Virus record (IMG/VR): IMGVR_UViG_3300020202_000001
Location: 62,001 to 126,000 of that record
Length of the DNA stretch: 64,000 nt
Direction: 5' to 3' (one strand)
Part shown: positions 11,790 to 54,948 of the stretch, in pieces
Layout of the letters: each line of letters opens with the position of its first letter
Position numbering within the stretch: position 1 is the stretch's first letter
The notes under the pieces: model-generated
What the model saw: only the letters and a program-made list of their open reading frames with translations
Told to the model about the DNA's origin: nothing
Database searches by the model: none
Program-made: the position numbers and the translations under genes

Positions 11790-13442
11790 ATGCCGCTCGA
11801 AATCACCGAACTCGACGCCCTGGACCCCACGCTGGTCGAGCAGTCGCTCGCCCAGACGGCCCAGCGCGTGCAGGAGGCGAACCCGACCCTCGACCTGAAG
11901 CGGGGCGTGTTCCACGATCTGCTCGTCTACCTGCACGCGCTGCTCGACAGCCAGCTCCGGGGCGGGGTCATCAACCGCTACCTGTCGGCCCGGTCGCTGC
12001 TGGACATCCAGGCCGACCCGACGCTCGCGGACCCGCTGGTCGTCGAGCGGGTGCTGAGCAACTTCCGCCTCTCGCGGGGCGAGGGGGCGGCGGCGACCGG
12101 CGAGGTGACGATCGTCATCAACCGGCCGATCAGCGTGACGGTCGGCAGCGGGGCGGTGTTCGTCGCCAACGGCCGGCGGTTCAGCGCGAACTCCGCGTTC
12201 ACCGCCAAGCCCGAGGCGGCCCAGATCAACGGCCCGACCGACCGGCTGCTCACGCGGCTGAACGACGGGAACTACGCGTTCACGATCGACGTGACGGCGG
12301 CCGACGAGGGGACCGAGTCCCTGATCGCCAAGAACACGCTGGTCGTGCCGGTCGCCCAGCCGAACGGGTACGTCACCAGCTACGCGACCAGCGACTTCTC
12401 CGGCGGCCTGAACCCGGAGACGAACACCGAGCTGCTGGAGCGGCTGCAGCTCGGCGTCTCGTGCAAGGCCCCGAGCAACCGGCCGAACATGCAGGCCATG
12501 CTCCGCGACCAGGCGGAGTTCAGCCGCGTCGTCCACAGCTCGATCGTCGGGCACGGCGACGAGGAGATGCTCCGCGACCAGCACACGATCTTCCCGGTCA
12601 GCCTCGGCGGCCGGGCCGACTGGTACGTCCGCACGGTCGAGCGGGTCCAGCGGATGACGCTGAAGAAGACGGCGACGCTCGTGTCGGTCGGCGACGACGG
12701 CACGGGCGTGTGGGCGTTCGGCCTCACGCGGGACGACGCCCCCGGCTTCTACGAGGTCGCGTCCGTCCTGCGGCCCGAGGCGGAGAACGTCGCCGGCACG
12801 CTGCCGATCACGTCCGACGTGCGGGGCGTGGACCTGACCGGCGACGGGTTCGTCCCGGACGTCGAGACGGTGGCCGAGGGGGCGTACACGAGGTACCAGA
12901 CGGCCTCGGTCCGGTTCCACGACGTGGCGACCGACCACGGGGCGCTGACGCCCGGGGCGACGCGGGAGTACGACGTCACGGTCACCGCCCTGCCGCTCGT
13001 CGGCCTGATCCACGACTACGTCACCGACTTCGAGGTGCGGAGCTACGGGAGCGACCTGTTGGTCAAGGCCCCGATCCCGTGCTTCCTCAAGGTCCAGTTC
13101 CGCGTGGCGAAGAACCGCAAGCAGGCGGACCCCGACGTGCTGGCGATCGCCGACGCCGTCGCCCGCGCCGCCAACACGACCGGGTTCACCGGCCGGCTGT
13201 ACGCCGGGCACCTGCAGGACGTGATCGCCGGCTACCTGCAGGACGGGATGAGCGTCGGGTCGATCGACATGTTCGGCCGCATCCGCCACCCTGACGGGAC
13301 CAGCTCGTACGTCCGCGGCGACGAGGTGCTCGTGATCCCGTCCGTCGACGGGGCGATGGTCAGCCCCCGCACCGTGCAGTTCTTCCTGGACCCGGCCGAC
13401 GTCGAGATCCAGGTCAGCACCGAGATCCCCGTGCCCCAGTGA
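11790..13442 (+). CDS. Baseplate J-like (gp6-like) wedge protein
   Basis: 550 aa; GAAATGEVTIV..GSGAVFVANG, SDFSGGLNPETNTELLERL and related BplJ-type segments; follows gp25-like gene. Confidence 0.75.
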   Translation: MPLEITELDALDPTLVEQSLAQTAQRVQEANPTLDLKRGVFHDLLVYLHALLDSQLRGGVINRYLSARSLLDIQADPTLADPLVVERVLSNFRLSRGEGAAATGEVTIVINRPISVTVGSGAVFVANGRRFSANSAFTAKPEAAQINGPTDRLLTRLNDGNYAFTIDVTAADEGTESLIAKNTLVVPVAQPNGYVTSYATSDFSGGLNPETNTELLERLQLGVSCKAPSNRPNMQAMLRDQAEFSRVVHSSIVGHGDEEMLRDQHTIFPVSLGGRADWYVRTVERVQRMTLKKTATLVSVGDDGTGVWAFGLTRDDAPGFYEVASVLRPEAENVAGTLPITSDVRGVDLTGDGFVPDVETVAEGAYTRYQTASVRFHDVATDHGALTPGATREYDVTVTALPLVGLIHDYVTDFEVRSYGSDLLVKAPIPCFLKVQFRVAKNRKQADPDVLAIADAVARAANTTGFTGRLYAGHLQDVIAGYLQDGMSVGSIDMFGRIRHPDGTSSYVRGDEVLVIPSVDGAMVSPRTVQFFLDPADVEIQVSTEIPVPQ

Positions 13443-23259: not shown

Positions 23260-24696
23260 ATGGCCAAGCCAGGCTTCTACAACGACAACCGCAACCGGGC
23301 CTTCCCGTTCGTGAAGGGCACGGTCGGGGACCTGTTGGCCGCCGCGGACACGGTTGCCGCCCTGCCGGCCGCCACGGTCGTCGACGCCGGGTTCGTCCTC
23401 GGCCTGCGGTCCGGGTTCATCGACGGCGTCCACAAGATCCGGCTGGAGAAGGTCCGCCGCGTCGGCGACGACGTGTACTTCGACTTCGCCTCCGACGCGC
23501 CGGCGCTGGTCGGCAAGCCGCTCACGTTCCACCGGTCGGCCGCGTCGGCCGAGGAGTACGAGACCGAGCACGTCGAGGTGCTGGACGAGGGGTACGTGAT
23601 CGTCAGCGCGGTGTCCCAGTCGGTCAGCGAGGGCGACCCGACGCCGGTCAACTGCGGGTGCATCCAGCTCGGCAAGAGCGGCAGCTTCGTCCCGAGCTGC
23701 ACGGGCACGATGCGGCTGTTCCTGAACGACGACAACTTCGCGGACAACAAGGGGTCGTTCACCGTCACGATCAACGGCGAGACGTTCGTCGTCCCGTCGA
23801 CCGAGCCGAACGGCGTGCCCGGCCCCGACGTCATCGCCGGCCAGACGTACGCCTACACGGCCAGCGGGCTCGTGGAGTTCGACGAGCGGCAGGGCGTGAA
23901 GCGGATGTGCGACCCGGACGGGCCGACGAGCGAGTCGATCAAGTACGGCATCCCCGGCGAGCACCCGTGCCCCGGGCTGGTCGAGTGGTCGCTGGTCGGG
24001 AAGCTGACCGGCAGCCCGGTCGTGACCCCGCCGCCGCCCACGACCACGCCGTCCGAGACGTGCGAGGGCGAGCCCCTGTGGGGCGGGTACCTCGTGACCG
24101 GCCGGCTGGCGGACCTCCTGACCGTGCTCCCGGGCGACGGGGAGGTGACCGGGGCGGTCGGGGCGGGCCTGGTCGAGCCCGCGCTGGTCCAGAACGACGC
24201 CAACTCGTACATCGGCAGCGTGAACGTCGGCAACGCGGACCGCACGCGGGTGGACGCTCCCGGCGACTGCCCGCCGTTGACCTGGCCCCACGACACCGGC
24301 GAAGATGTGATCTTCGTCAACGCGAGCTGCCTGCGGGGCGACATCCGGTTCAAGCCCGGGTACAACGCGATCGTCCGGCAGGAGTCGGACACGAACCTGC
24401 TGATCTTCGGTGCCGAGGTCGGGGCCGGCGAGGGCCAGCCGTGCGACCAGGTGCCGCTGTTCGACGGGGAGGTGCCGCCGGCCGGGAGCGCCCTGCTGGA
24501 GGGCGGCCCCCGGTGCAACGAGGTGATCCGCTCGATCAACGGCGTGGGCGGCAAGTTCGCCGCGCTGCTGGGCGGGACGGGCGTCACCGTGACGCAGCTG
24601 CCGGCGTCGAACAAGGTCGTCGTCGACGTGAACATGGGCGGGCTTGCGGCGTGCTTCGCGTCGAGCGAGTTCTCGGAAGTGTCGGAAACGCTGTAG
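23260..24696 (+). CDS. Virion protein, paralogue 5, with a lectin-like insert
   Basis: [13 protein letters not shown]-terminus; [20 protein letters not shown]; [14 protein letters not shown]. Confidence 0.65.
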
Positions 24697-24745
24697 TACC
24701 ACCGGCGGCCAAGGACGGCCGTCGCACCAGACACGGAGGTCTGTC

Positions 24746-27700
24746 ATGCCGGTCCCCTGCACGGGCTCCACGCCCGGCGTCTTCACGCCGAGCGGCACGG
24801 TCCACACGATCGAGACCGACATCACGAAGGGCACCCCCGTGTACTTCGCCGGGGGCATGTCGTTCCCCGCCGGCCGGTACCGGATCAAGTACCTCCGCGG
24901 CTGCCTGAAGTTCCGCCACGACTTCGACTGGGGCGTCGACACGACGTTCAAGGTCAGCGTCGACCCCGGCAGCGGGGCCACGGACATCGGCCAGGCCCCG
25001 GGCGTCGAGAACCGGCTGCCGAAGGTGAACCACCAGGGCGACGGGTCCAACCCGAACGCCAAGATCCGCGGCAAGGGCTGGCCGACGAAGGGCGAGGCCG
25101 AGGCGGCCAACCAGAACGCCCCGCCGTTCGAGTTCAACCACGGCGGCGGCAAGATCGGCGTGCGGCTGGCCGACAGCCCGTACTCGGACAACATCAGCGG
25201 CAAGCCGAGCCCGAAGTACACGCTCCAGCTCCTGGAGCCGTGCACGGTCCCGATCCCGCCCGGCGTCCCGCCCGAGACGCCCGAGGTCACGATCGTCACC
25301 TACCCGCCCACGCCGGAGGCGTTCCCCCGCGCCCGCGTGAAGTGCGGCGTGCCCGAGGTGCCGGGCATCCCCCAGCTGCCGATCATCAACGTCTGCATCG
25401 TGCCGCCCGCCCCGCAGCCGATCCTGGCGTGCCCGGAGCCGGTGGTGAACATCCCGCCGCCCGAGCAGGCGATCCCGTGCCCGCAGATCCAGGTCGGGGC
25501 GTCGTTCGAGGTGAAGGTCGGGCCGCCGTCCGTCACGCTGACCACGACCTCGACCAACACGACCGACGCGTGCGGCGACGCGACGTGCGGCACGCAGATG
25601 CACTTCGCGTTCCAGCTGCCGCCGACGCCGCAGATCCCCTGCCCGCAGATCACCGTGCAGTCCCAGACGACGGTGACGCCGGGCAACCCCGACGCCACGG
25701 TCACGGTGGAGACGCTCCCGGGCGGCCCGCCGGACCCGTGCCGGTTCAAGTTCAACTTCGCGTTCCAGCTCCCCCCGCCGCCGCCGTGCCCGCAGATCGA
25801 GGCGGAGTACACGTCGACGACGACCGAGGGCGACCCGTCCGCGAGCGTGACGGTCACGAAGACCGCGGACGACCCGTGCCGCTACCTGTTCAACTTCGCG
25901 TTCCAGATGCCGCCCGCCCCGCAGTGCCCGGAGATCGAGGCCGAGGCCACGACCACGGTCACCGAGGGCAGCCCGTCCGCGAGCGTCGAGGTCACGAAGG
26001 AGAGCGATGACCCGTGTAAGTACAAGTTCGCGTTCGCGTTCCAACTTCCACCGGCCCCTCAAGTTCCCTGCCCGCAAATCGAGGCTACATCTACCACGAC
26101 GGTCACCGAGGGCAGCCCCTCCGCCAGCGTCGAGGTGACCAAGGAGTCGGACAACCCGTGCTCCTACAAGTTCTCGTTCGCGTTCCAGCTTCCGCCCGCC
26201 CCGCAGGCACCGCAGTGCCCGACGATCACGGGCAGCGCGTCGGCGACCAGCACCGAGGGCGAGGCCAGCGCCAGCCTCGACGTGCAGAAGACGGGCGACG
26301 ACCCCTGCGCGTACAGCTTCACGTTCGCGTTCCAGGTCCCCAAGGGGCCGCAGGGGCCGTACGGCCCGACCGGGCCGTGCCCCCAGGTGACGGCGTCGGC
26401 GTCGGCGACCACCACGGAGGGCGACGCAGCCAGCGCCTCCGTCGAGGTCAGCGAGCAGTCCGGCTGCCACAAGGTGTTCACGTTCGCGTTCCAGCTCCCC
26501 AAGGGGCCGCAGGGTCCGCAGGGGCCGACCGGCCCGCAGGGGCCGCGCGGGTACCAGGGTCCGCAGGGTCCGACCGGCCCGCAGGGCAGCACCGGGCCGC
26601 AGGGGCCGACCGGCCCGCAAGGCATGACGGGGGCACAGGGTCCTCAGGGGCGTACCGGCCCGCAGGGTCCGACCGGCCCGCAGGGGGCGGACGGCGTCTG
26701 CCCGCAGTGCCCGCCCGGCGCTCAGGGTCCGACCGGGCCACAGGGTCCGACCGGCCCGATGGGTGCTCAGGGTGCCGTGGGCGCTCAAGGTGCCCCCGGC
26801 CCGCAGGGTGCCACGGGGGCGACCGGGGCGACCGGCCCGCAAGGCCCGACCGGGCCGACCGGCGCGACCGGTGCGACCGGCGACACGCCCGACGTCGGCT
26901 TCGCAACCACCGCCAACGCACTGCCGCACGGCTCGCCGCCGACCGCAGACGTCATCCCGTTCAGCGGCGGGCCGCAGAACCCGGTCTTCCTCATCACGTT
27001 CGGCATCCCCGAAGGTGCCCAAGGCGCGACCGGCCCCCAAGGCCCGACCGGCCCGCAAGGCACGACCGGGGCGACAGGGGCCACCGGCGACACGGGACCG
27101 CAGGGTCCGACCGGCCCGACCGGTGCGACCGGCGACGTCGGTCCCCAAGGGCCGACCGGCCCGCAAGGAGCTACCGGCGCGACGGGTGCTACGGGCGAAG
27201 TTGGGCCACAGGGTCCGACCGGCGCTACGGGTGCGACCGGTGATGTCGGTCCGCAGGGTCCGACCGGCCCGCAGGGAGCCACTGGCGCGACGGGTGCCAC
27301 GGGCGAGATCGGACCTCAAGGCTCGACGGGTGCCACCGGCCCGCAAGGCCCCACGGGTCCGACCGGCGCGACGGGTGCCACGCCCGAGATGGCCCTGACC
27401 TCGACGGCGAACACGCTGCCGGCCGGGTCGGCGGCGACGGCCACCGTCTCGCAGACGGCCGGCGGGCCGCAGAACCCGACGTTCGAGTTCACCTTCGGCA
27501 TCCCCGAGGGTGCCGCCGGGGCGACGGGCTCCCAAGGTTCCACCGGCCCGCAAGGTCCCACGGGTCCGACCGGCGGCACGGGCGACATGGGTCCGCAGGG
27601 ACCGACCGGTGCCACCGGCGCTCAAGGGGCGACGGGGCCACAGGGTCCGACCGGCCCGCAGGGTGCGACCGGGGCGACGGGTTCGATGGGTCCGCAGGGT

Positions 27701-29158
27701 CCGACCGGGCCGACCGGGCCGACCGGCGCGAACGGTGCTGACGGCGCTGTCGGACCGCAAGGCCCGACCGGCCCGCAAGGAGCGACCGGCGCAACGGGCG
27801 AGACGGGGCCAGCCGGCCCGGCTTCGGTCGGCGAGACCGGCCCGCAAGGCCCGGCAGGCGCGACGGGTGCCACCGGCGCTCAGGGCAGCGTGGGTGCAAC
27901 GGGTCCGCAGGGACCGACCGGTGCCACCGGCTCGACGGGCTCGCAAGGGCCGATCGGGCCGACCGGGTTCCAGGGCGGCACCGGCGCTTCCGGCCCGCAA
28001 GGCCCCACCGGTGCCACCGGTGCCACGGGTGCCCAAGGCCAGAACGGCTCGACCGGGCCGCAGGGTCCGACCGGAGCAACGGGCGCGACCGGGCTCCAGG
28101 GTCCGACCGGCCCGAGCGGGCAACAGGGCTCGCAGGGTTACCAGGGTCCGACCGGTCCGGTCGGCCCGCAGGGCAGCACGGGTGCCACCGGCGCGACCGG
28201 TGCCCAAGGCCAGAACGGCTCGACAGGTCCGCAAGGCCCCACCGGCCCGAGCGGCCAGCAGGGATCGCAAGGCGTCCAAGGTCCGGCGGGTCCGACCGGG
28301 CCGCAGGGTGCCACCGGTGCGACCGGCGCGACCGGACCGCAGGGTTCGCCGGGTGCCACCGGCCCACAGGGTCCGACCGGGGCGACCGGCCAGACGGGTC
28401 CCCAAGGCCCGATGGGTCCCACCGGTTACCAGGGCGGCATGGGGGCGACGGGTGCCACCGGCGCGCAGGGTCCGATGGGCTACACCGGAAGCACCGGCGC
28501 TCAGGGTCCGGTGGGGCCGAGCGGTGCTCAGGGTCCGATGGGCTACACCGGCAGCACCGGGGCTCAAGGCCCGATGGGGCCGAGCGGCTACAACGGCAGC
28601 GACGGGCCGCAGGGTCCGATGGGGCCGAGCGGCCAGCAAGGGCCGCAGGGCCAGCAGGGCATGATCGGGCCGCAGGGTCCGACCGGCTCGACCGGCAGCA
28701 ACGGCGCGGACGGCCCGCAGGGGCCGAGCGGTCCGACCGGCCCGCAGGGCGGCAAGACGGCGATCGTCGCGATCGACGGCAAGTACCGCGGCCTGTTCTG
28801 CACGGAAGGCCCGGAGGTCTGGTTCCAGGACTTCGTGGACGTCGAGGTCGAGATCGACGAGTGCGGGTGCGGCACGACGCGGCACCCGATCGACCCGCTG
28901 TTCATCAAGGCGTGCGAGCCGGGCTCGATCCGCGTCGCGTCCCACGCCGTCGACGCGCTCGGGCTGTCGTGCTCGTTCCTCGACGGCGGCGTGATCGTCG
29001 TCGCGGTGAACGAGGCGGTCGGTGCCAAGCGGGCGACGGCCGTCGTCGGCCTGGTCGGCGTCCGCAAGGGCTTCGCCAAGGTCCGGTTCCCCGAGTACAG
29101 CGAGGCCCAGTTCAAGGCGAACACCGCCTTCTACCAGTCGGCGTACACCCATGGCTAA
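24746..29158 (+). CDS. Collagen-like fibre protein (1470 aa)
   Basis: Start ATG 24746 with GGAGG SD; N-terminal globular domain, seven Cys-paired repeats, long Gly-X-Y region, C-terminal [14 protein letters not shown] domain. Confidence 0.85.
25472..26500 (+). repeat. Seven ~45-aa repeats CPxI...EGxxSASVxV...DPCxYxFxFAFQxP
   Basis: Counted directly in the translation. Confidence 0.85.
26504..28750 (+). repeat. Gly-X-Y collagen repeats (GPQ, GPT, GAT dominant), about 215-220 triplets with two ~44-aa interruptions
   Basis: Seen directly in the translation. Confidence 0.95.
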
Positions 29159-47057: not shown

Positions 47058-48209
47058 TTGGCGACGAAGACCATGCCCGAAACCGGGCTCCCCGTGCTGT
47101 ACAGCCGGCGGAGCGACAAGAAGATCCAGACCTGGCGCATCGAGGTCGACCCCGCCGGCCGGTTCCGCGTCCACAGCGGGATCGAGGACGGCAAGACCGT
47201 CACCAGCGAGTGGACCCAGTGCGTCGGGAAGAACCCTGGCAAGAAGAACGCGACGACGCCCCAGCAGCAGGCGGAGCTGGAGGCCCGCGCCCTGTGGAAG
47301 AAGAAGCAGGACGAGGGCTACAAGGTGAACGTCGCCGACGTGGACGTCCAGACGGCCTTCTGGCCGATGCTGGCCGAGCACTACGACGACTTCCCCGAGC
47401 TGGTGAAGGCCGCGTTCGCGGCGGGCGAGACCGTGATGTGCCAGCCGAAGCTGGACGGCATGCGGTGCGTGACCCGCCTCGACGGGATGTGGAGCCGCAA
47501 CGGCAAGCCGGTGCCGTCCGCCCCGCACGTCTACGAGGCCCTGTCCAAGCAGCTCCGGCACTACGCCCAGGTGACGTTCGACGGGGAGCTGTACGCGGAC
47601 AAGTTCGCGGACGACTTCAACAAGATCATCTCGCTGGCGAAGAAGGGCAAGCCGAAGCCGGCCGACCTGGCCGAGTCGGCCGAGCACCTGCAGTACCACG
47701 TCTACGACGCCCACTCGGCGGCCCTGCCCGACCGGCCGTTCTCGAAGCGGCACGCGTTCCTCCGCGACGTGGTCGAGCTGGTGAACCACCCCGCGATCGT
47801 GCTCGTCGAGACGGTCGTCGCCCAGGACATGGAGCACATCGAGACGCTCTTCGGGCAGTGGCGGGCGAAGGGGTACGAGGGGGCGATGATCCGCCTCGAC
47901 CGGCCGTACGAGAACAAGCGGTCCCGGAGCCTGCTGAAGTTCAAGCAGTTCGTCGAGGAGGAGTTCAAGGTCGTCGACGTGATCGAGGGCGTCGGCAACA
48001 AGTCCGGGATGGCGGGCGCGCTGGAGTTCAAGACCGCGGCGGGGCGTAAGTTCACCGCCGCGATCATGGGCAACCGCGCGTTCTTCCGAAAGCTCCTCGC
48101 CGACAAGAAGAACGTGAAGGGCAAGGTCGCCACGGTGCAGTTCCAGAACTACACCCCGGACGGGAGCCCCCGGTTCCCGTGCGTCAAGGCGATCCGCGAC
48201 TACGAGTAG
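47058..48209 (+). CDS. lig: ATP-dependent DNA ligase with an N-terminal WGR-like domain
   Basis: Motif I QPKLDGMR, motif III FDGELY, YHVYDA, motif IV GYEGAMIR, motif V LLKFK, OB-fold TVQFQNYTPDGSPRFP. Confidence 0.9.
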   Translation: MATKTMPETGLPVLYSRRSDKKIQTWRIEVDPAGRFRVHSGIEDGKTVTSEWTQCVGKNPGKKNATTPQQQAELEARALWKKKQDEGYKVNVADVDVQTAFWPMLAEHYDDFPELVKAAFAAGETVMCQPKLDGMRCVTRLDGMWSRNGKPVPSAPHVYEALSKQLRHYAQVTFDGELYADKFADDFNKIISLAKKGKPKPADLAESAEHLQYHVYDAHSAALPDRPFSKRHAFLRDVVELVNHPAIVLVETVVAQDMEHIETLFGQWRAKGYEGAMIRLDRPYENKRSRSLLKFKQFVEEEFKVVDVIEGVGNKSGMAGALEFKTAAGRKFTAAIMGNRAFFRKLLADKKNVKGKVATVQFQNYTPDGSPRFPCVKAIRDYE

Positions 48210-49042: not shown

Positions 49043-49522
49043 ATGGAACTGAACACCGCTATCATCACCTGGTGCGATCGCACGCTGAACCCGCGGCCCG
49101 GCTACTACGCCGGACGCGGACCCAAGCGGGGCGACCTGAACGACAAGCACCTCCAGCAGCTGTGGGCCGGCATCAAGAAGGACTTCGGCGACGAGCAGGC
49201 GGCCGAGTTCGTGAAGATGGTCGCGGACCTGAAGGACATGAGCGCCACGGCGTTCCTCGTGTCCATGGAGCACTTCTGGGCTCACGGCCTGAAGTGGACC
49301 GGCCGCGAGCAGGAGCCGGGCGACGGCAACACGATGTCCGCCCGGGGCGACGATCGGTTCACCGAGGGCATGTGCGTCATCGCCTCCGTCCTCGGCCGGC
49401 AGAACTCGTCGCCCGAGCAAGAGGCGTTCGAGTCCTACAACATCAAGGCCCCGTTCCTGCGACGGCACGGAGTCGAGATCGAGCCGCCAGCCCTCGGCGG
49501 CGAAGTCTTCGGGTACCGATGA
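49043..49522 (+). CDS. Hypothetical protein
   Basis: 159 aa; ATGA coupling to the kinase-like gene. Confidence 0.6.
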   Translation: MELNTAIITWCDRTLNPRPGYYAGRGPKRGDLNDKHLQQLWAGIKKDFGDEQAAEFVKMVADLKDMSATAFLVSMEHFWAHGLKWTGREQEPGDGNTMSARGDDRFTEGMCVIASVLGRQNSSPEQEAFESYNIKAPFLRRHGVEIEPPALGGEVFGYR

Positions 49523-50454
49523 AGAAACCCAGGCCGAAGCGACGCCTCGACATCCCCACGGTCTCCGGCAAGTTCGGGACCGGGGCGACGGTGTGGGGCG
49601 CGAAGCACGAGTACACGGTCGGGAAGCTGGTCGGACAGACCACGACGAGCGACCTGTACCTCGCGACCCCCGGCGTCGGCGACCCCGCCTTCATCAAGAT
49701 CGTCCGCGACCCGGACGACAACGACCTCGCCGAGCGTGAGGTCGAGATCCTGAGCCACGTCTACCCCCGCGTCTGGGCGGAGGGCAAGAAGTACCTGCCC
49801 CAGCTCGTCGAGGTCGTCGACGTGTCGGACGAGGACGGCAAGCGGAAGGCGCTCGTCTTCCCGTACGACCCGCGGTTCTACTCGCTGGCCGAGGTGCTGG
49901 CCGAGTACCCGCAGGGCGTCGAGCCGAAGCACGCGGCGTGGATGATTAACCGGATGCTGGAGGCGATCCACTTCGCCAACTACACGGCCGGCGTCGTCCA
50001 CGGGGCGCTGCTGCCCCACAACTTCCACGTCCACGCCGACACGCACGCCGGGCTGATGACCGAGTGGTCGTTCGCGGCCCGCGACGCGTACGAGGTTCAC
50101 GACGGCTCGGGCACGAACCTGAAGCCGGGCGAGGACGTCGTCGCGGTCGACGACGCGTACCAGGCGTGGTACCCGCCGGAGGTGCTGAAGAAGGAGCCGC
50201 ACAACTTCTCGGTCGACCTGTGGATGATGAGCAAGTGTGCGATCCAGCTGTTGGGCGGTGACCCCCTTTCGGGTAAGCTGCCCGCGTCGGTGCCGAAGCC
50301 GATCGCCGGGTTCCTGCGGTACATCACGCTCCAGCAGGACCCGTCGAAGCGGCCGCAGGAGGCCCTCAAGCTCCACGACGAGTTCGGCGACATCTGCAAG
50401 CAGGTGTTTGGCCCCAAGAAGTTCCACAAGTTCCACATGCCGCCGCGGGCGTAA
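49519..50454 (+). CDS. Hanks-type protein-kinase-fold protein with degenerate catalytic motifs (pseudokinase-like)
   Basis: Start ATG 49519; FIKI..alphaC REVEIL, VHGALLPHN, LMTEWS, WYPPEVL, SVDLWMMSKC. Confidence 0.7.
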   Translation: MKKPRPKRRLDIPTVSGKFGTGATVWGAKHEYTVGKLVGQTTTSDLYLATPGVGDPAFIKIVRDPDDNDLAEREVEILSHVYPRVWAEGKKYLPQLVEVVDVSDEDGKRKALVFPYDPRFYSLAEVLAEYPQGVEPKHAAWMINRMLEAIHFANYTAGVVHGALLPHNFHVHADTHAGLMTEWSFAARDAYEVHDGSGTNLKPGEDVVAVDDAYQAWYPPEVLKKEPHNFSVDLWMMSKCAIQLLGGDPLSGKLPASVPKPIAGFLRYITLQQDPSKRPQEALKLHDEFGDICKQVFGPKKFHKFHMPPRA

Positions 50455-50466
50455 CCGCGGGGCAGT

Positions 50467-50486
50467 TCCAAAAACCGGTTTTGAGA
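50467..50486. promoter_or_regulatory. Dispersed palindrome, copy 8 (TCCAAAAACCGGTTTTGAGA)
   Basis: Intergenic between the kinase-like and vWA genes. Confidence 0.85.
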
Positions 50487-50518
50487 TCCGGTAGTGTCCG
50501 TCAGAAGGAGTCCCACCC

Positions 50519-51493
50519 ATGGGCGGTAGCAACTTTTCCTCCGAAGCGTACGCCACGAAGTCCGTCCTCCGCGCCAGCGCCGGCGTCGCGGGCCGGTCCA
50601 CGATGCACACCAAGGCCGTCAGCGAGGGCAAGGCCCCGGCGCTGCACGACAAGATGAGCCCGATGGGCGTGAAGGTCCGCGAGAGCCGCGACAGCGCCGT
50701 GCACCCGAACAGCACGGGCGTGATCTTCCTGCTCGACGTCACGGGCAGCATGGGCCAGGTGCCCGTGCAGATCCAGAAGCACCTGCCGGTCCTGCCCGAG
50801 ACGCTCGTCAAGGGCGGGCACCTGCCCGACGCCGCGATCATGATGATGGCGGTCGGCGACGCCTACTGCGACACGGTCCCGCTCCAGGTCGGGCAGTTCG
50901 AGTCCGGCAACGAGATGGACGAGGACCTCGACCGCCTCTACATCGAGGGCGGCGGGAGCCCCGGCCACATGGGCGGCCACGAGAGCTACGAGCTGGGCAT
51001 GTACTTCGCCGCCCGGCACACCGCGATGGACTGCCTGGAGAAGCGGAACCGCAAGGGCTACCTCTTCATCGCGTGCGACGAGATGCCGTACGACGTCGTC
51101 AAGCGCGACCAGGTCAAGCGGATCATGGGGCCGACCGCCGAGATCGAGGCGGACATCCCGCTCGACGAGATCGTCGCGGAGCTGAAGAAGAAGTTCCACG
51201 TCTACGTCCTGATCGCGCCGACCGCGTCCGGCCAGCAGCCCGCCGTCCGCCAGCGGTGGCAACAGCTGTTCGGCGAGAACGTCATCATGCTCCCCAGCGC
51301 CGAGCAGACGGCGAAGCTCGTGGCCGACTGCATCGCGGCCAACGAGGAGGCGATCGGCAAGGGCCAGGTCTTCGCGACGGCGGACGACGACGCCGGCGGC
51401 GACGACGCGGACGCCGACGACCACGGCAGCGGTGGCACGGCCACCGCCACCAAGCCCGCCGTGAAGAAGCCCGGCAAGGCCAAGCGGCTGTAA
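50519..51493 (+). CDS. von Willebrand factor A domain protein
   Basis: MIDAS motif FLLDVTGSM, GGGS..HESYE, LFIACDE; acidic then basic C-terminal tail. Confidence 0.8.
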   Translation: MGGSNFSSEAYATKSVLRASAGVAGRSTMHTKAVSEGKAPALHDKMSPMGVKVRESRDSAVHPNSTGVIFLLDVTGSMGQVPVQIQKHLPVLPETLVKGGHLPDAAIMMMAVGDAYCDTVPLQVGQFESGNEMDEDLDRLYIEGGGSPGHMGGHESYELGMYFAARHTAMDCLEKRNRKGYLFIACDEMPYDVVKRDQVKRIMGPTAEIEADIPLDEIVAELKKKFHVYVLIAPTASGQQPAVRQRWQQLFGENVIMLPSAEQTAKLVADCIAANEEAIGKGQVFATADDDAGGDDADADDHGSGGTATATKPAVKKPGKAKRL

Positions 51494-51526
51494 CCGCGAC
51501 CCGCACCGTAACCCCGTAACCACAGG

Positions 51527-51552
51527 AGGCCCCGGCGGAGACGCCGGGGCCT
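51527..51552 (+). terminator. Perfect 11-bp hairpin with GAGA tetraloop just before the AdSS-like start
   Basis: AGGCCCCGGCG-GAGA-CGCCGGGGCCT followed by ACCCTTT-ATG. Confidence 0.55.
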
Positions 51553-51559
51553 ACCCTTT

Positions 51560-53056
51560 ATGCAGCAGACGAAGGTTTACGTCGTTGTCGATCTGGGCTT
51601 CGGTGACGCCGGCAAGGGCACGGTCGTGGACTACCTGGTCCGCACGCGCAAGGCCGGCACCGTGGTCCGATTCAACGGCGGGGCACAGGCGGCCCACAAC
51701 GTGACGCTCCCGGACGGCCGGCGGCACCCGTTCAGCCAGTTCGGCAGCGGGACGTTCGTGCCGGGCGTGAAGACGTACCTCACCGAGGACGTCCTGTTCG
51801 ACCCCAACTCCCTGCTCGGCGAGGAGGCCGCCCTGCAGGCGCTGGGCGTGACCGACGCGTTCGAGCGGTTCGCGGTGCACGAGGAGTGCCTCGTCGTCAC
51901 CCCGTTCCACCGGACGGCCAACCGGCTGCGGGAGGTGGCCCGCGGCGACAAGCCGCACGGGAGCTGCGGGATGGGCATCGGCGAGGCGATGTCCGACGCC
52001 ACCGGCCGCGACAAGGTCGCGATCCGCGTCAAGGACCTACTGCTGCCCGCCGACGAGCTGCGGCGGAAGCTGGAGTGGGTGCGGCAGTACAACGAGGGCA
52101 AGGCGCTCGTCTACTACCCGAAGTACAAGGAGCACCAGCTGGGGCAGGGCCTCGACCCATCGGCCGTCGAGTGGTTCCTCGACCAGTGCCGCCGCGTGGC
52201 GGACCTGGTGACGATCGCCGATGACGCGTACGAGGACAAGCACGTCTTCAACTGCGACAGCGACCAAGTCGTCGTGTGCGAGGGAGCACAGGGCGTCCTG
52301 CTCGACGAGCACTACGGGTTCCACCCCTACACGACGTGGAGCACGGTGACCCCGCACCGGGTGCTGGAGAAGATCCGCGAGGCGAACTACATCACCGGCA
52401 CGGTCGGCGGCGAGGTCGAGCGGGTCGGCGTGACGCGGGCGTACCAGACGCGGCACGGGGCCGGGCCGTTCCCGACGTGGGAGCGGGGCGGCAAGGCGTG
52501 GGAGCACCTCGGTGCCCCCGACGCCAACAAGGAGCACGAGTGGCAGGGCAAGTTCCGCGTGGGCTGGCTCGACACCGTGCTCCTGCGGTACGCGATCGAG
52601 GCGTGCAGCGTGCCGTGGTCGACGCAGACGATCGACTGGCTGGCCGTGACGTGCCTCGACCGGCTGCACGGGGCGTTCCCGCAGGTGCCGGTCTGCACGC
52701 ACTACGTCCAGTACCGGGCGGACGCGAAGAAGGTCAGGCACCTGCCGGTCGCCCGCCGGCCCACGCTCGGCGGGCAGGAGATCCTCACGGAGTTCCTGAT
52801 GGGTGCCCAGCCGAGCCAGTTCCCCCGGTTCGACGTGAGCTACCAGGCGGTCGACTACGACCACCTGCTGCCGTACATCGAGCAGCAGGTGGGCGTCCCG
52901 GTGGGGCTCTCCAGCCGGGGGCCGACGTGGCAGGACAAGCTCGAACACGAGGCGTGGGTCGTGCACGGGATTTACGGCAAGACGAAGGTGAAACATGGGC
53001 CTGAAGAAGTCGGTCGAAATCCTGGCGAAACTCAACTTCAGTTCCGAACGCCTTAG
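51560..53056 (+). CDS. Adenylosuccinate-synthetase-family protein (divergent paralogue)
   Basis: GFGDAGKG, RFNGGAQAAHN, EGAQGVLLD..YGFHPYTTWS, VTRAYQTRHGAGPF, RVGWLD, LAVTCLD. Confidence 0.85.
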   Translation: MQQTKVYVVVDLGFGDAGKGTVVDYLVRTRKAGTVVRFNGGAQAAHNVTLPDGRRHPFSQFGSGTFVPGVKTYLTEDVLFDPNSLLGEEAALQALGVTDAFERFAVHEECLVVTPFHRTANRLREVARGDKPHGSCGMGIGEAMSDATGRDKVAIRVKDLLLPADELRRKLEWVRQYNEGKALVYYPKYKEHQLGQGLDPSAVEWFLDQCRRVADLVTIADDAYEDKHVFNCDSDQVVVCEGAQGVLLDEHYGFHPYTTWSTVTPHRVLEKIREANYITGTVGGEVERVGVTRAYQTRHGAGPFPTWERGGKAWEHLGAPDANKEHEWQGKFRVGWLDTVLLRYAIEACSVPWSTQTIDWLAVTCLDRLHGAFPQVPVCTHYVQYRADAKKVRHLPVARRPTLGGQEILTEFLMGAQPSQFPRFDVSYQAVDYDHLLPYIEQQVGVPVGLSSRGPTWQDKLEHEAWVVHGIYGKTKVKHGPEEVGRNPGETQLQFRTP

Positions 53057-53444
53057 GCGGGCCGTGTGCCACGCCCTGGCGACGGACTACTACAGCGAGG
53101 CCGGCATCGTCGACCGGTTCGAGCTGTACCACATCGCGGTCTGGTACGTCGAGGACAGCCACCAGCCGACCCTCGACGAGTTCGACGAAGAGTTGCAACA
53201 GAAGGCCGCACGCATCGTGCGGCGATTGGTCCCGGAGCTACGACATGGCAAAGGAAACGCGAAACTTTCGGATGCACCCCAAGCTGCTGATGGACGTCAT
53301 CAAGCGGCAGGCCGGCACGCTGTCCAAGGCCATCCTCGAAGGCGTGATGAACGCCGAGGACGCAAGGGCGAAGAAGGTCAGCATCTCGCTGACAGAGGAC
53401 AGCCTCGTGATCGAGGACGACGGCGAAGGGTTCAAAAGCCGTGA
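52995..53444 (+). CDS. Small hypothetical protein (coding-like part ends near 53250; run-on tail overlaps the next gene)
   Basis: GC3-rich codons fill the gap between the AdSS-like and GHKL genes. Confidence 0.5.
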   Translation: MGLKKSVEILAKLNFSSERLRRAVCHALATDYYSEAGIVDRFELYHIAVWYVEDSHQPTLDEFDEELQQKAARIVRRLVPELRHGKGNAKLSDAPQAADGRHQAAGRHAVQGHPRRRDERRGRKGEEGQHLADRGQPRDRGRRRRVQKP

Positions 53445-54948
53445 CACGATCGTGAAGTTCTTCGAGGTGTTCGGGCAGCCGCACGACGCCTCGGAGGGCA
53501 AGAAGTTCGGGACGTTCCGCATGGGCCGCGGCCAGCTGTTCGCCTTCGGGTCGAACGAGTGGCAGACCGGCACCTACCGGATGCACGTCGACATCAACGA
53601 GAAGGGCCTCGACTACGACCTGGAGACGGACGCCAAGAAGGTGCCCGGCTGCCGGATCGAGATCAAGCTGTACGAGCCGATCGGCCTGTCGGGCGTCGCC
53701 GACGTACGGCGGGACCTGGAGCTGTGGTGCAAGTGGGTGTACCCGTGCCGGGTGTACTTCAACGGCGACATGATCTCCAACAACCCCGAGCTGGGGAAGT
53801 GGACGGACCGCACGCCCGAGGCGTTCGTCAACCTGAAGGAGAAGGGGTCGCTCGTCGTCTACAACCTCGGCGTGTACGTCTGCGAGTTCCCGGCCCACAA
53901 GTTCGGCACCGGCGGCGAGGTCGTCTCGAAGCAGCAGCTGCGGGTGAACTTCGCCCGCAACGACATCCAATCGGACTGCCCGGTCTGGCGGAAGGTCAAG
54001 CCGTTCATCGACCAGCGGGCGAGCGAGCGGGTGAAGGACAAGAAGAGCCTCAACGACGACGAGCGCCAGCGGCTCGCCGACAAGCTCCGCCGGGGAGAGA
54101 TGGAGGGCGACGAGGCGAGCCGGCAGCTCCGGCTGTTCACCGCCGTCACCGGCCGGCACTTCGCGGCCGACGACCTGATCGACGCCCACGGGTACAAGGC
54201 GTTCTCGGTGGCCCCGAAGGGCGACCGCACCGGGGAGCTGGTCATGAACCGCGGGCTGGCGTTCGTCTTCGCGACGCAGACGCTGGAGCGGTTCGAGTGC
54301 ACCGGCGTGCCCGAGCTGCTGGAGTGGGTCGCCAAGACGTTCGCCCGCGACTACGAGACGCAGTGGGCGTGCAAGAAGCCCTACAAGCCGTTCGAGGAGC
54401 TGCGGAAGGGCCTGAGCGACGACTACACGATCCTCGACGAGAACGAGCTGACGCCGAAGGAGCTGCTCTGGCTCCGGCTGCTCGAAGCCAAGGCCGACCT
54501 CCTCTGCACCGAGGGCCGCGGGTGCTACTCCAGTTGGCGGGGCGCGAGCGCCCGCAAGCTGATGATCGGGCTGACCGACGCGGCCCACGGGTGGACCGAC
54601 GCGTCGACGTACGTCGCGATCAACCGGAAGTGGCTGCTGAAGCGCGAGCCCGACGTGGCGGGCATCACGGACGTCGGCATGCTGCTGATCCACGAGGCGT
54701 GCCACCACACGCCCGACCTCGAAGAGCACGACCACGACCAGGAGTTCTTCGAGGAGTACCACGACATGACGCACCTCTGCCTGTCGAAGTTCGTGTCGTC
54801 CGCGTTGGCGTACGTCCCGAAGGTCGCGGAGCAGACGGGCCAGAAGCTGGCGAAGAAGCAACTGAAGGCGATCGACAAGGCCGCCGAGGCCGGACGGTCC
54901 GCCGGGAAACTTGAGCGGTCGGTCGCCGCTCGGCAAGGCAAGAGCTGA
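53245..54948 (+). CDS. GHKL (Hsp90/MORC-like) ATPase fused to a C-terminal HExxH zincin-like domain
   Basis: AILEGVMNAEDA, IEDDGEGF, GTFRMGRG; LLIHEACHHTPDLEEHDHDQEFF at 54691. Confidence 0.75.
   Translation: MAKETRNFRMHPKLLMDVIKRQAGTLSKAILEGVMNAEDARAKKVSISLTEDSLVIEDDGEGFKSRDTIVKFFEVFGQPHDASEGKKFGTFRMGRGQLFAFGSNEWQTGTYRMHVDINEKGLDYDLETDAKKVPGCRIEIKLYEPIGLSGVADVRRDLELWCKWVYPCRVYFNGDMISNNPELGKWTDRTPEAFVNLKEKGSLVVYNLGVYVCEFPAHKFGTGGEVVSKQQLRVNFARNDIQSDCPVWRKVKPFIDQRASERVKDKKSLNDDERQRLADKLRRGEMEGDEASRQLRLFTAVTGRHFAADDLIDAHGYKAFSVAPKGDRTGELVMNRGLAFVFATQTLERFECTGVPELLEWVAKTFARDYETQWACKKPYKPFEELRKGLSDDYTILDENELTPKELLWLRLLEAKADLLCTEGRGCYSSWRGASARKLMIGLTDAAHGWTDASTYVAINRKWLLKREPDVAGITDVGMLLIHEACHHTPDLEEHDHDQEFFEEYHDMTHLCLSKFVSSALAYVPKVAEQTGQKLAKKQLKAIDKAAEAGRSAGKLERSVAARQGKS

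Follow-up and report, generated by a model that had tools for sequence, protein, structure and literature searches.

The described proteins closest to the gene analysed here are the canonical adenylosuccinate synthetase (AdSS) PurA (EC 6.3.4.4; PDB 1ADE and 1CG0) and the PurZ and PurZ0 proteins of Z-genome phages (PDB 6FM1, 7ODX and 7VF6), which are phage-borne AdSS homologues with an altered choice of substrate. In Escherichia coli PurA, R303 touches both the O2' of inosine 5'-monophosphate (IMP) and the aspartate substrate, and the tip of a Thr-rich loop binds aspartate and is strictly conserved in PurZ (PMC8342488), which still uses this amino acid. All 147 phage PurZ proteins carry Ser at position 13, and in a tree of 481 phage PF00709 proteins only the PurZ group was characterised, the 'other PurA homologs' serving as the root (PMC12884076). 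We analysed an AdSS-family gene that lies on the + strand at positions 51560..53056 of a 64,000-nucleotide stretch of DNA (hereafter, the window), corresponding to bases 62001-126000 of the complete 224,418-bp viral record IMGVR_UViG_3300020202_000001, which has direct terminal repeats. Its product, P0001 (498 aa), belongs to a distinct monophyletic paralogue family of the AdSS superfamily that is neither PurA nor PurZ/PurZ0. We predict, with a probability of roughly 0.55, that it is a GTP-dependent ligase which uses a nucleophile other than aspartate and acts with the products of its gene cassette as one module tied to NAD/ADP-ribose metabolism.

The open reading frame (ORF) of P0001 encodes the full-length PurA fold, with about 28-30% identity to PurA. 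The AdSS domain spans residues 4-460, and the remaining C-terminal tail, about 38 aa long, shows no homology. PF00709 was matched by residues 8-457 over profile positions 1-412 of 416 (E 8.2e-64), PHROG 1211 was matched at E 2e-76 and the PDB structures of PurA at E about 1e-37, while the Atlas structure model of the protein (predicted TM-score, pTM, 0.87; TM 0.78-0.82 to an AdSS cluster) confirmed the fold. For residue mapping we used HMMER alignments to the E. coli and Yersinia PurA structures together with two MAFFT alignments that included E. coli PurA (MG1655), all of which agreed; substituted and retained positions are given below in E. coli PurA numbering, and all motifs lie on the + strand. 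P0001 keeps D13, K16, H41, Q224, T239, R306, D333, S414, G416 and P417. The equivalents of D13 and K16 are found in the P-loop GDAGKG (protein residues 15-20, 51602..51619) and that of H41 in GGAQAAHN (residues 40-47, 51677..51700), in which N38 is replaced by Q, while Q224 and T239 are kept in EGAQG and the following GFHPYTTWST (52280..52345), which carries the substitutions Y235H and S240W. The guanine-specifying D333 is retained in TCLD, found in place of TKLD (52649..52660; K331C), as is the guanine-binding motif S414-x-G416-P417 in SRGP (52913..52924). Because the GTP and phosphoryl-transfer apparatus is retained together with D13 and Q224, the first half-reaction appears to be kept, and P0001 probably shares with PurA the GTP-dependent O-phosphorylation step.

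Most other substrate contacts are different. The aspartate-binding loop ATTGRRRR, which reads [AVT]-T-T-G-R in 10 of 10 aligned canonical PurA proteins, is replaced by EHEWQGKFR (residues 325-333, 52532..52558), giving the substitutions T300E, T301W, G302Q, R303G, R304K and R305F; this mapping is sound because an invariant R-x-G-W-L-D follows the loop and fixes its alignment with no gap in between. A clade signature, HGSCGMGIGE (residues 133-142, 51956..51985), stands in place of xIGTTGRGIGP and brings in T128S, T129C, R131M and P135E, and TRHGAGPF (52448..52471) carries V273H, a clade-wide change. With R131 and R305, which we take from the structural literature to be residues of the aspartate pocket, and with T300, T301 and R303, every aspartate-binding position is replaced in P0001 and in its clade. 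The same holds in part for N38, T129, T239 and R143, the ligands of the IMP 5'-phosphate in E. coli PurA: in P0001 they read Q, C, T and K, so that T239 alone is retained, and the R143 column is variable across the clade. The loss of N38, T129 and R143 suggests that the phosphate end of the first substrate is also unlike that of IMP. The motifs to which the first-pass annotation of this DNA had drawn attention, including the rebuilt loop, are real and lie at the positions it implied, the loop exactly at the coordinates it gave, and its view that the GTP and phosphoryl-transfer residues were kept while the amino-acid pocket was rebuilt is borne out across the clade; the remodelling of the IMP 5'-phosphate site is an addition to it, as are the partner genes and the NrtR/Nampt linkage described below.

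The substitutions recur in the family at a frequency far above chance. Among 120 relatives with 41-47% identity, Q38 was found in 120, C129 in 117 and H273 in 119, and in the loop W301 was present in 119/120, Q302 in 120/120 and F305 in 106/120. The catalytic and GTP-binding residues D13, K16, H41, Q224, D333 and S414-x-G-P were kept in 118-120 of the same 120 proteins, with D13, H41 and Q224 invariant and D333 present in 118. Since the replacement residues are near-invariant, we interpret them as a selected pocket and not as decay. This bears on the proposal that the protein has lost its ligase activity and serves as a GTP-binding regulatory subunit, a nucleotide-gated switch for the two partner proteins of the cassette. 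The remodelling of both substrate pockets beside an intact GTP site would suit such a role, as would the nature of the partners, a scaffold-type vWA protein and a pseudokinase. Nevertheless, the invariance of the base D13, the acid H41 and Q224, together with the near-invariance of the remodelled residues themselves, points to a specific ligand pocket under selection and not to a relic, and we consider a purely regulatory role very unlikely. With R131, T300, T301, R303 and R305 lost, S240 replaced by W and V273 by H, every carboxylate contact is gone and the pocket has become an aromatic one without charge (W, Q, F, M, W, H), and the displacing nucleophile is therefore predicted not to be aspartate.

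To place P0001 within the superfamily, we compared it with curated models and with its relatives. It scored 185.9 bits against the NCBIfam PurA model NF002223 (cut-off 402), 172.1 bits against TIGR00184 (cut-off 395.55) and 57.7 bits against the PurZ model NF038379 (cut-off 300). Word-indexed and exhaustive HMMER searches recovered hundreds of relatives at 40-50% identity, with at least 150 clusters (at the 50% identity level) scoring 270 bits or more; one of the searches was limited to proteins of 0.55-1.75 times the query length, and the exhaustive search of representatives, run without this limit, returned proteins of 376-516 aa as its top 150. In a maximum-likelihood tree of 65 sequences, the paralogue clade had a support of 100 (Shimodaira-Hasegawa-like approximate likelihood ratio test, SH-aLRT) on a stem of 1.02 substitutions per site, and both the canonical PurA group (SH-aLRT 99) and the PurZ plus PurZ0 group (97) stood apart from it. 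Because the tree was built with a quick LG+G4 setting and some long branches were flagged, only this separation into three groups is to be taken as reliable. Phage and bacterial members were intermixed inside the paralogue clade, and the AdSS homologues of Rhizobium phage TM40 and Vibrio phage pv27 nested within it. The signatures of the clade, N-G-G-x-Q-A-x-H, H-G-S-C-G-x-G-[IV]-G-E, G-F-H-P-Y-T-T-W-S, T-R-H-G and W-Q-x-x-F-R-x-G, are all present in P0001. P0001 therefore fits neither established family, as had been proposed from the sequence, and it departs from PurA on four counts, namely the aspartate residues, the IMP 5'-phosphate ligands, the equivalog score, and the grouping in the tree with the pairing to PurB.

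A search with the motif HGSCGxG[IV]GE found the family in at least 577 species genomes of GTDB, from Chloroflexota, Patescibacteria, Myxococcota, Actinomycetota, Planctomycetota, Abditibacteriota and some Proteobacteria, and in about 195 contigs of IMG/VR, chiefly phages of 100-500 kb. The nearest relatives among GenBank phages are in about 200 cluster C mycobacteriophages, in which the protein (gp104 in Tonenili) is annotated 'PurA-like'; these proteins belong to the clade of P0001, with 36-37% identity, shared motifs and the same cassette, even though Tonenili represents a phage lineage and a host other than those of the window phage. The RefSeq copies of the cluster C genes (NC_031080.1, Tonenili gp104; NC_067270.1) and PHROG 1211 bear the name '2-aminooxy adenylosuccinate synthetase', where the GenBank originals have 'PurA-like'. 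As Asp13 is kept and the proteins fall outside the PurZ clade, this label looks like a propagated misannotation. Our literature searches found no paper that reports the distinct pockets of the clade, the gene cassette described below or its linkage to NrtR and Nampt, nor a published function for the cluster C genes.

The same label is one of two observations that would favour a PurZ-like enzyme whose product, 2-aminoadenine or some other modified purine, would go into phage DNA, the other being the presence of an AdSS homologue in a phage. Several differences speak against it. PurZ and PurZ0 have Ser at position 13 (GSTGKG and GSEAKG), as in all 147 phage PurZ/PurZ0, while P0001 has GDAGKG and thus, as the first-pass annotation had pointed out, the Asp of PurA. 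PurZ is short and of archaeal-type architecture (the four proteins aligned have 343-409 aa), while P0001 has the long, bacterial type; PurZ keeps the Thr loop that contacts aspartate, while that of P0001 is rebuilt; and the score of 58 bits on the PurZ model, against a cut-off of 300, agrees with the separate clade. PurZ is accompanied by DatZ, MazZ, DutZ or DpoZ. Across the complete 224-kb phage record, no match was found for PurB (PF00206) or DatZ (PF12917); in a search of the phage for PF04447 (DUF550, MazZ), the control itself gave no match. In addition, the same cassette is found in bacterial chromosomes, unrelated to DNA replication. We therefore regard a role in DNA modification as extremely unlikely, and the earlier suggestion that the product could be a modified purine for DNA is not supported.

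To evaluate whether the paralogue takes the place of PurA, we looked for both proteins in the same genomes. Canonical PurA was present in 8 of the 10 carrier genomes examined, where it scored 457-617 bits on PF00709 as compared with 190-250 for the paralogue. In an even sample of 201 Chloroflexota genomes, the vWA partner was found in exactly five, and the same five alone had a paralogue-class match (571-592 bits with the clade profile), while every canonical PurA of the sample scored 234 bits or less with this profile. The vWA and AdSS-like genes were adjacent in all five carriers, and all five also encoded canonical PurA. In two Saccharibacteria genomes the paralogue was the only AdSS homologue; PurB was not found in either of them, while the control genomes were positive. 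These data weigh on the explanation that P0001 is a genuine adenylosuccinate synthetase (IMP, Asp and GTP) whose aspartate loop is merely unusual and which gives the phage more AMP. The full-length PF00709 match, the retention of D13, H41 and Q224, the database name (adenylosuccinate synthase) and the two Saccharibacteria without another homologue would agree with this. However, no aspartate contact survives anywhere in the clade, not even at R303 and the Thr loop, which PurZ keeps, the scores are below half of the PurA equivalog cut-offs, canonical PurA coexists in most carriers, PurB was not found in the two paralogue-only genomes, and the genes are linked to vWA and not to purine genes, so that we judge the explanation to be most improbable. 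The lost contacts, the coexistence with PurA and the missing PurB together make a nucleophile other than aspartate a reasonable inference, as the first-pass annotation had proposed.

A further difference from PurA is the linkage of the clade to other genes. We clustered the ORFs from 160 related loci and found a vWA protein of about 325 aa encoded immediately upstream of the AdSS-like gene in 145 of them, or in about 145 of the 148 loci where this flank exists, with only three fully flanked loci having no vWA neighbour. A kinase-like protein of about 350 aa was encoded upstream of the vWA gene in 126/160 loci. The commonest order is thus kinase-like, vWA, AdSS-like, and the window (49519-53056) agrees with it, as does the Tonenili mycobacteriophage, where the same cassette comprises gp106 ('kinase'), gp105 (hypothetical) and gp104. 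In bacterial chromosomes the trio lies amid unrelated, variable genes, outside prophages. No natural fusions were found among the members of the cassette, the long ORFs being upstream read-through artefacts of high-GC DNA. The pairs of RHph_TM40 (L187:1971-4245) and pv27 (L188:2025-4107), the most divergent members, keep the vWA gene (MGGG.../MGGA...) beside the AdSS gene and have no kinase-like gene; a Met/Gly-rich low-complexity protein is encoded upstream, and the AdSS loop reads H/F-Q-G-x-x-R/K.

The vWA partner in the window (324 aa, 50519..51493, +) was identified by its AlphaFold2 (AF2) fold and conservation. It gave no Pfam or NCBIfam match even at E 0.1, no PADLOC match and no PDB profile match, so that the fold search alone identified it: the AF2 model (predicted local distance difference test, pLDDT, 85) matched the integrin I-domain and vWF-A1 in Foldseek. 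The protein starts with MGGSNF, carries the metal-ion-dependent adhesion site (MIDAS) DVTGSMG (D73-x-T75-x-S77) and has a disordered tail that ends in -KRL. In the family, the MIDAS D-x-T-x-S is invariant, an N-terminal Met-Gly is found in 103/104 proteins and the tail ends in -RL in 55/104; gp105 of Tonenili is likewise a vWA protein (MGSGAW...DRL).

The conserved N terminus raises the possibility that the AdSS-like protein is a protein-directed ligase, which would join a purine nucleotide through N6 to the alpha-amine of the partner's N-terminal Gly after removal of Met. Apart from the near-universal Met-Gly, which is also seen in the curated Tonenili gp105 and in the divergent TM40 and pv27 pairs, the adjacency of the two genes in about 145/148 assessable loci would fit such a substrate, and the loss of the carboxylate-binding Arg and Thr residues with the gain of W, F and M suits a nucleophile without carboxylates. 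On the other hand, natural fusions are missing, the invariant Gly might have other uses and the NrtR/Nampt linkage would be left unexplained; a predicted complex of the AdSS-like protein with the vWA protein, for which both alignments were supplied, had ipSAE scores of 0.00 and 0.00, which we counted neither way. Overall, we find this explanation distinctly unlikely.

The kinase-fold partner, P0265 (311 aa, 49519..50454, +), was assigned from its AF2 fold and its catalytic-loop columns. It has a weak match to Pfam Pkinase and kinase-domain matches to PglW and MAD6, and its AF2 model (pLDDT 92.7) is best matched in Foldseek by Hanks-type kinases (Aurora A, CaMKII and PknB; TM 0.65-0.70). P0265 retains the VAIK Lys and the alpha-C Glu and has Glu in place of the DFG Asp, while its catalytic loop reads V-H-G-A-L-L-P-H-N instead of H-R-D-L-K-P-x-N. 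The family as a whole has H-G-A-V-L-P-x-[HN] in this loop, and because the catalytic Asp is replaced by a near-invariant Ala, the partner is predicted by the usual criteria to be a pseudokinase or an atypical enzyme. Some kinase-like members carry an N-terminal J domain or a zinc ribbon, and P0265 has neither. Kinase-fold and vWA proteins are also encoded together with a third component in the TerY-P triad and in PrkA-YeaH-SpoVR, but those kinases have a predicted activity, and a PP2C phosphatase or SpoVR stands as third component where the cassette has an AdSS fold; no sequence relationship was found, the vWA partner having no Pfam matches.

The kinase-like gene of the window starts in an ATGA, in which its ATG shares bases with the stop codon of the gene before it, and the vWA gene has a good Shine-Dalgarno sequence, AAGGAG, 8 nt upstream of its ATG. 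The vWA stop and the AdSS start are separated by a 66-nt spacer, in which there is a GC-rich hairpin with an 11-bp stem (51527..51552, +); the whole RNA fold has an energy of -30.5 kcal/mol (z -3.68). An AGGAGG is found at 51524-51529, 30 nt upstream of the ATG at 51560, with the hairpin in between; folding of the hairpin may draw this Shine-Dalgarno sequence near the AdSS start codon, or the hairpin may be a processing or attenuation element.

Apart from the members of the cassette, the only recurrent neighbours in the 160 loci were NAD-related genes. A protein composed of NUDIX and an NrtR winged-helix domain was encoded in 24/160 loci from at least four lineages, and the same architecture was found beside P0014. 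As the Nudix catalytic box is missing in 23 of the 24, we consider these proteins to be regulators. Nampt was found in 10/160 loci and NADAR in 5-6/160. The operon begins with nrtR in seven Actinomycetota loci, while in Saccharibacteria nrtR usually lies immediately upstream in the divergent orientation. One phage group shows the order NrtR-Nampt-vWA-AdSS-kinase, with Nampt placed between vWA and AdSS in L115, and in two of those phages a Nmnat-type gene lies about 0.6 kb downstream of the kinase-like gene. Jumbo-phage clusters that comprise NrtR-like, Nampt, vWA, AdSS-like, pseudokinase and Nmnat-type genes were located at L115:3889-9392, L088:4505-11522 and L122:3037-11568; a NADAR gene follows in L115. 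Genes for nucleoside 2-deoxyribosyltransferase-like and dNMP-kinase-like proteins lie upstream in L086, L088, L111 and L112.

The regulatory DNA of these loci carries a corresponding element. NrtR binds a 21-bp palindrome with a GT-N7-AC core and leaves the DNA upon binding ADP-ribose, a product of NAD cleavage (PMC2330246). The divergent nrtR spacers of the cassette loci share a 21-bp palindrome, TAAGTGTA-N5-TACACTTA, with the GT-N7-AC core. In the 2.33 Mb of loci, 16 near-matches to the palindrome were found, of which 8 are located either in the nrtR spacer or no more than 135 bp upstream of the gene that opens the cassette. Such NrtR-box-like palindromes precede the cassette in bacteria of the candidate phyla radiation (CPR) and in Chloroflexota, including Chloroflexota loci without an adjacent nrtR. 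More copies were seen away from the cassette in CPR loci (L034:1819-1904, L044:3565-3649, L024:2157-2177 and L004:3849-3869), often as pairs about 65 bp apart; these presumably front other NrtR targets, and Nampt is encoded in L034 and L044 as well. In Streptomyces, Frankia, Kineococcus, Proteus and Hahella, NrtR has been predicted to control operons of unknown function named 'nrtX-nrtY' (Rodionov et al., 2008; PMC2330246, Table 1), which may be related to the cassette.

Nampt and Nmnat constitute the NARP2 pathway, and some jumbo phages hold the cassette between these two genes, behind an NrtR-type regulator. The NARP papers that we consulted describe no AdSS-like, vWA or pseudokinase component, and the Prs-like Adps of NARP1 was absent from 5/5 phages of the Nampt-containing group. 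NARP3, which consists of PnuC and a NadR-like protein, was considered as a related system and rejected. Unlike the NARP2-associated loci, the window phage has no Nampt or NrtR: a tblastn search of the whole phage gave no match for nrtR, Nampt, Nmnat or NADAR, and the window holds no NrtR-box palindrome at up to 2 mismatches. The link to NAD is thus a property of the family, which we extend to P0001 by inference, since neither an NAD gene nor a box is found in the window or its phage.

A module for signalling or conflict, unrelated to NAD salvage, could account for the same loci. Here the pseudokinase and the vWA protein would sense a cue and activate the AdSS-like enzyme, which would make or destroy a modified nucleotide signal, in bacterial defence or in phage counter-defence. 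The trio is self-contained with variable flanks, lies beside AbiE in one locus and beside a PIN toxin in another, and has been taken up by many large phages, with phage and bacterial members mixed in the tree; moreover, the kinase partner resembles the defence kinases PglW, MAD6 and PD-T4-6. However, no PADLOC model matches the AdSS-like or vWA proteins, and the kinase partner gives only generic kinase-domain matches and has no catalytic Asp. The defence-island context is not consistent, and the recurrent neighbours are NAD genes rather than defence genes. We consider this explanation unlikely, if less so than the other alternatives.

Taken together, we favour a GTP-dependent ligase with a non-aspartate nucleophile that works within a cassette tied to NAD/ADP-ribose metabolism. 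In the reaction that we propose, GTP would first phosphorylate an oxygen (the lactam oxygen in PurA) of a bound nucleotide-like, purine-like substrate, and a nucleophile other than aspartate would then displace the phosphate. Candidates for this nucleophile would be ammonia, nicotinamide or another heteroaromatic amine, or a peptide N terminus, namely the glycine amine of the vWA partner. The vWA protein would be a co-factor or substrate and the pseudokinase presumably a regulator, so that the three proteins would act as a single module linked to NAD/ADP-ribose metabolism; in the window phage, which has no NAD genes, this could be an auxiliary module that adjusts the nucleotide or NAD pool of the host during infection. 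Several points weigh against this interpretation. NAD neighbours occur in about one-fifth of the loci, and most loci, including that of the window phage, have no NAD gene nearby. The incompleteness of metagenome-assembled genomes could account for the PurB gap in the two Saccharibacteria, and the complex prediction gave no verdict. Finally, a purine substrate is still likely, given that P0001 retains the two residues, D13 and Q224, by which PurA handles the 6-oxopurine.

A bolder version of the proposal, which we offer tentatively and regard as rather doubtful, is that the AdSS-like, vWA and pseudokinase proteins constitute a new NAD/ADP-ribose pathway. GTP would activate a breakdown product, either a purine or an ADP-ribose-type nucleotide, which would be coupled to nicotinamide, ammonia or the N-terminal glycine of the partner. 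In bacteria NrtR would switch the pathway on as ADP-ribose rises, and in large phages it would be a fourth NAD-restoring counter-defence beside NARP1-NARP3.

The remainder of the window is consistent with a phage genome of high G+C content (about 69%), with tight gene packing on the + strand and no tRNAs seen. Its source is a divergent jumbo phage, considered very divergent because most of the other large proteins in the window had no PHROG match. A baseplate wedge homologue (phrog_6) is encoded at 11790-13442 (+). The ORF at 24644-29158 (+), with a G+C content at third codon positions (GC3) of 0.88 on the + strand, encodes about 1,500 aa in which G, P, T and A abound and long G-X-Y repeats resemble those of collagen; the protein is probably a collagen-like tail fibre, and the antisense ORF of equal length opposite to it is a compositional artefact. 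Upstream of the cassette, an ATP-dependent DNA ligase (DNA_ligase_A_M and OB_2) is encoded at 47058-48209 (+). Directly downstream of the AdSS-like gene, the ORF at 53245-54948 (+) encodes a protein of 567 aa that has a GHKL/HATPase_c_3 ATPase domain in its N-terminal part and weak PADLOC matches to type II restriction endonuclease and TmtA models. The ligase, the HATPase_c_3 protein and the small ORFs were left out of the system because they are not conserved beside the cassette in other loci.

A gene named adenylosuccinate synthetase is therefore carried by hundreds of bacterial and hundreds of phage genomes in which it potentially catalyses a new reaction, and the '2-aminooxy' label used in phage annotation pipelines wrongly implies the synthesis of purine or of the Z base. 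Since Mycobacterium smegmatis is a host for the cluster C mycobacteriophages, in which the same cassette is present, both genetics and biochemistry are feasible at once, and the cassette provides a testable entry to a possibly new reaction of NAD or nucleotides and to the conflicts between phages and their hosts over NAD.

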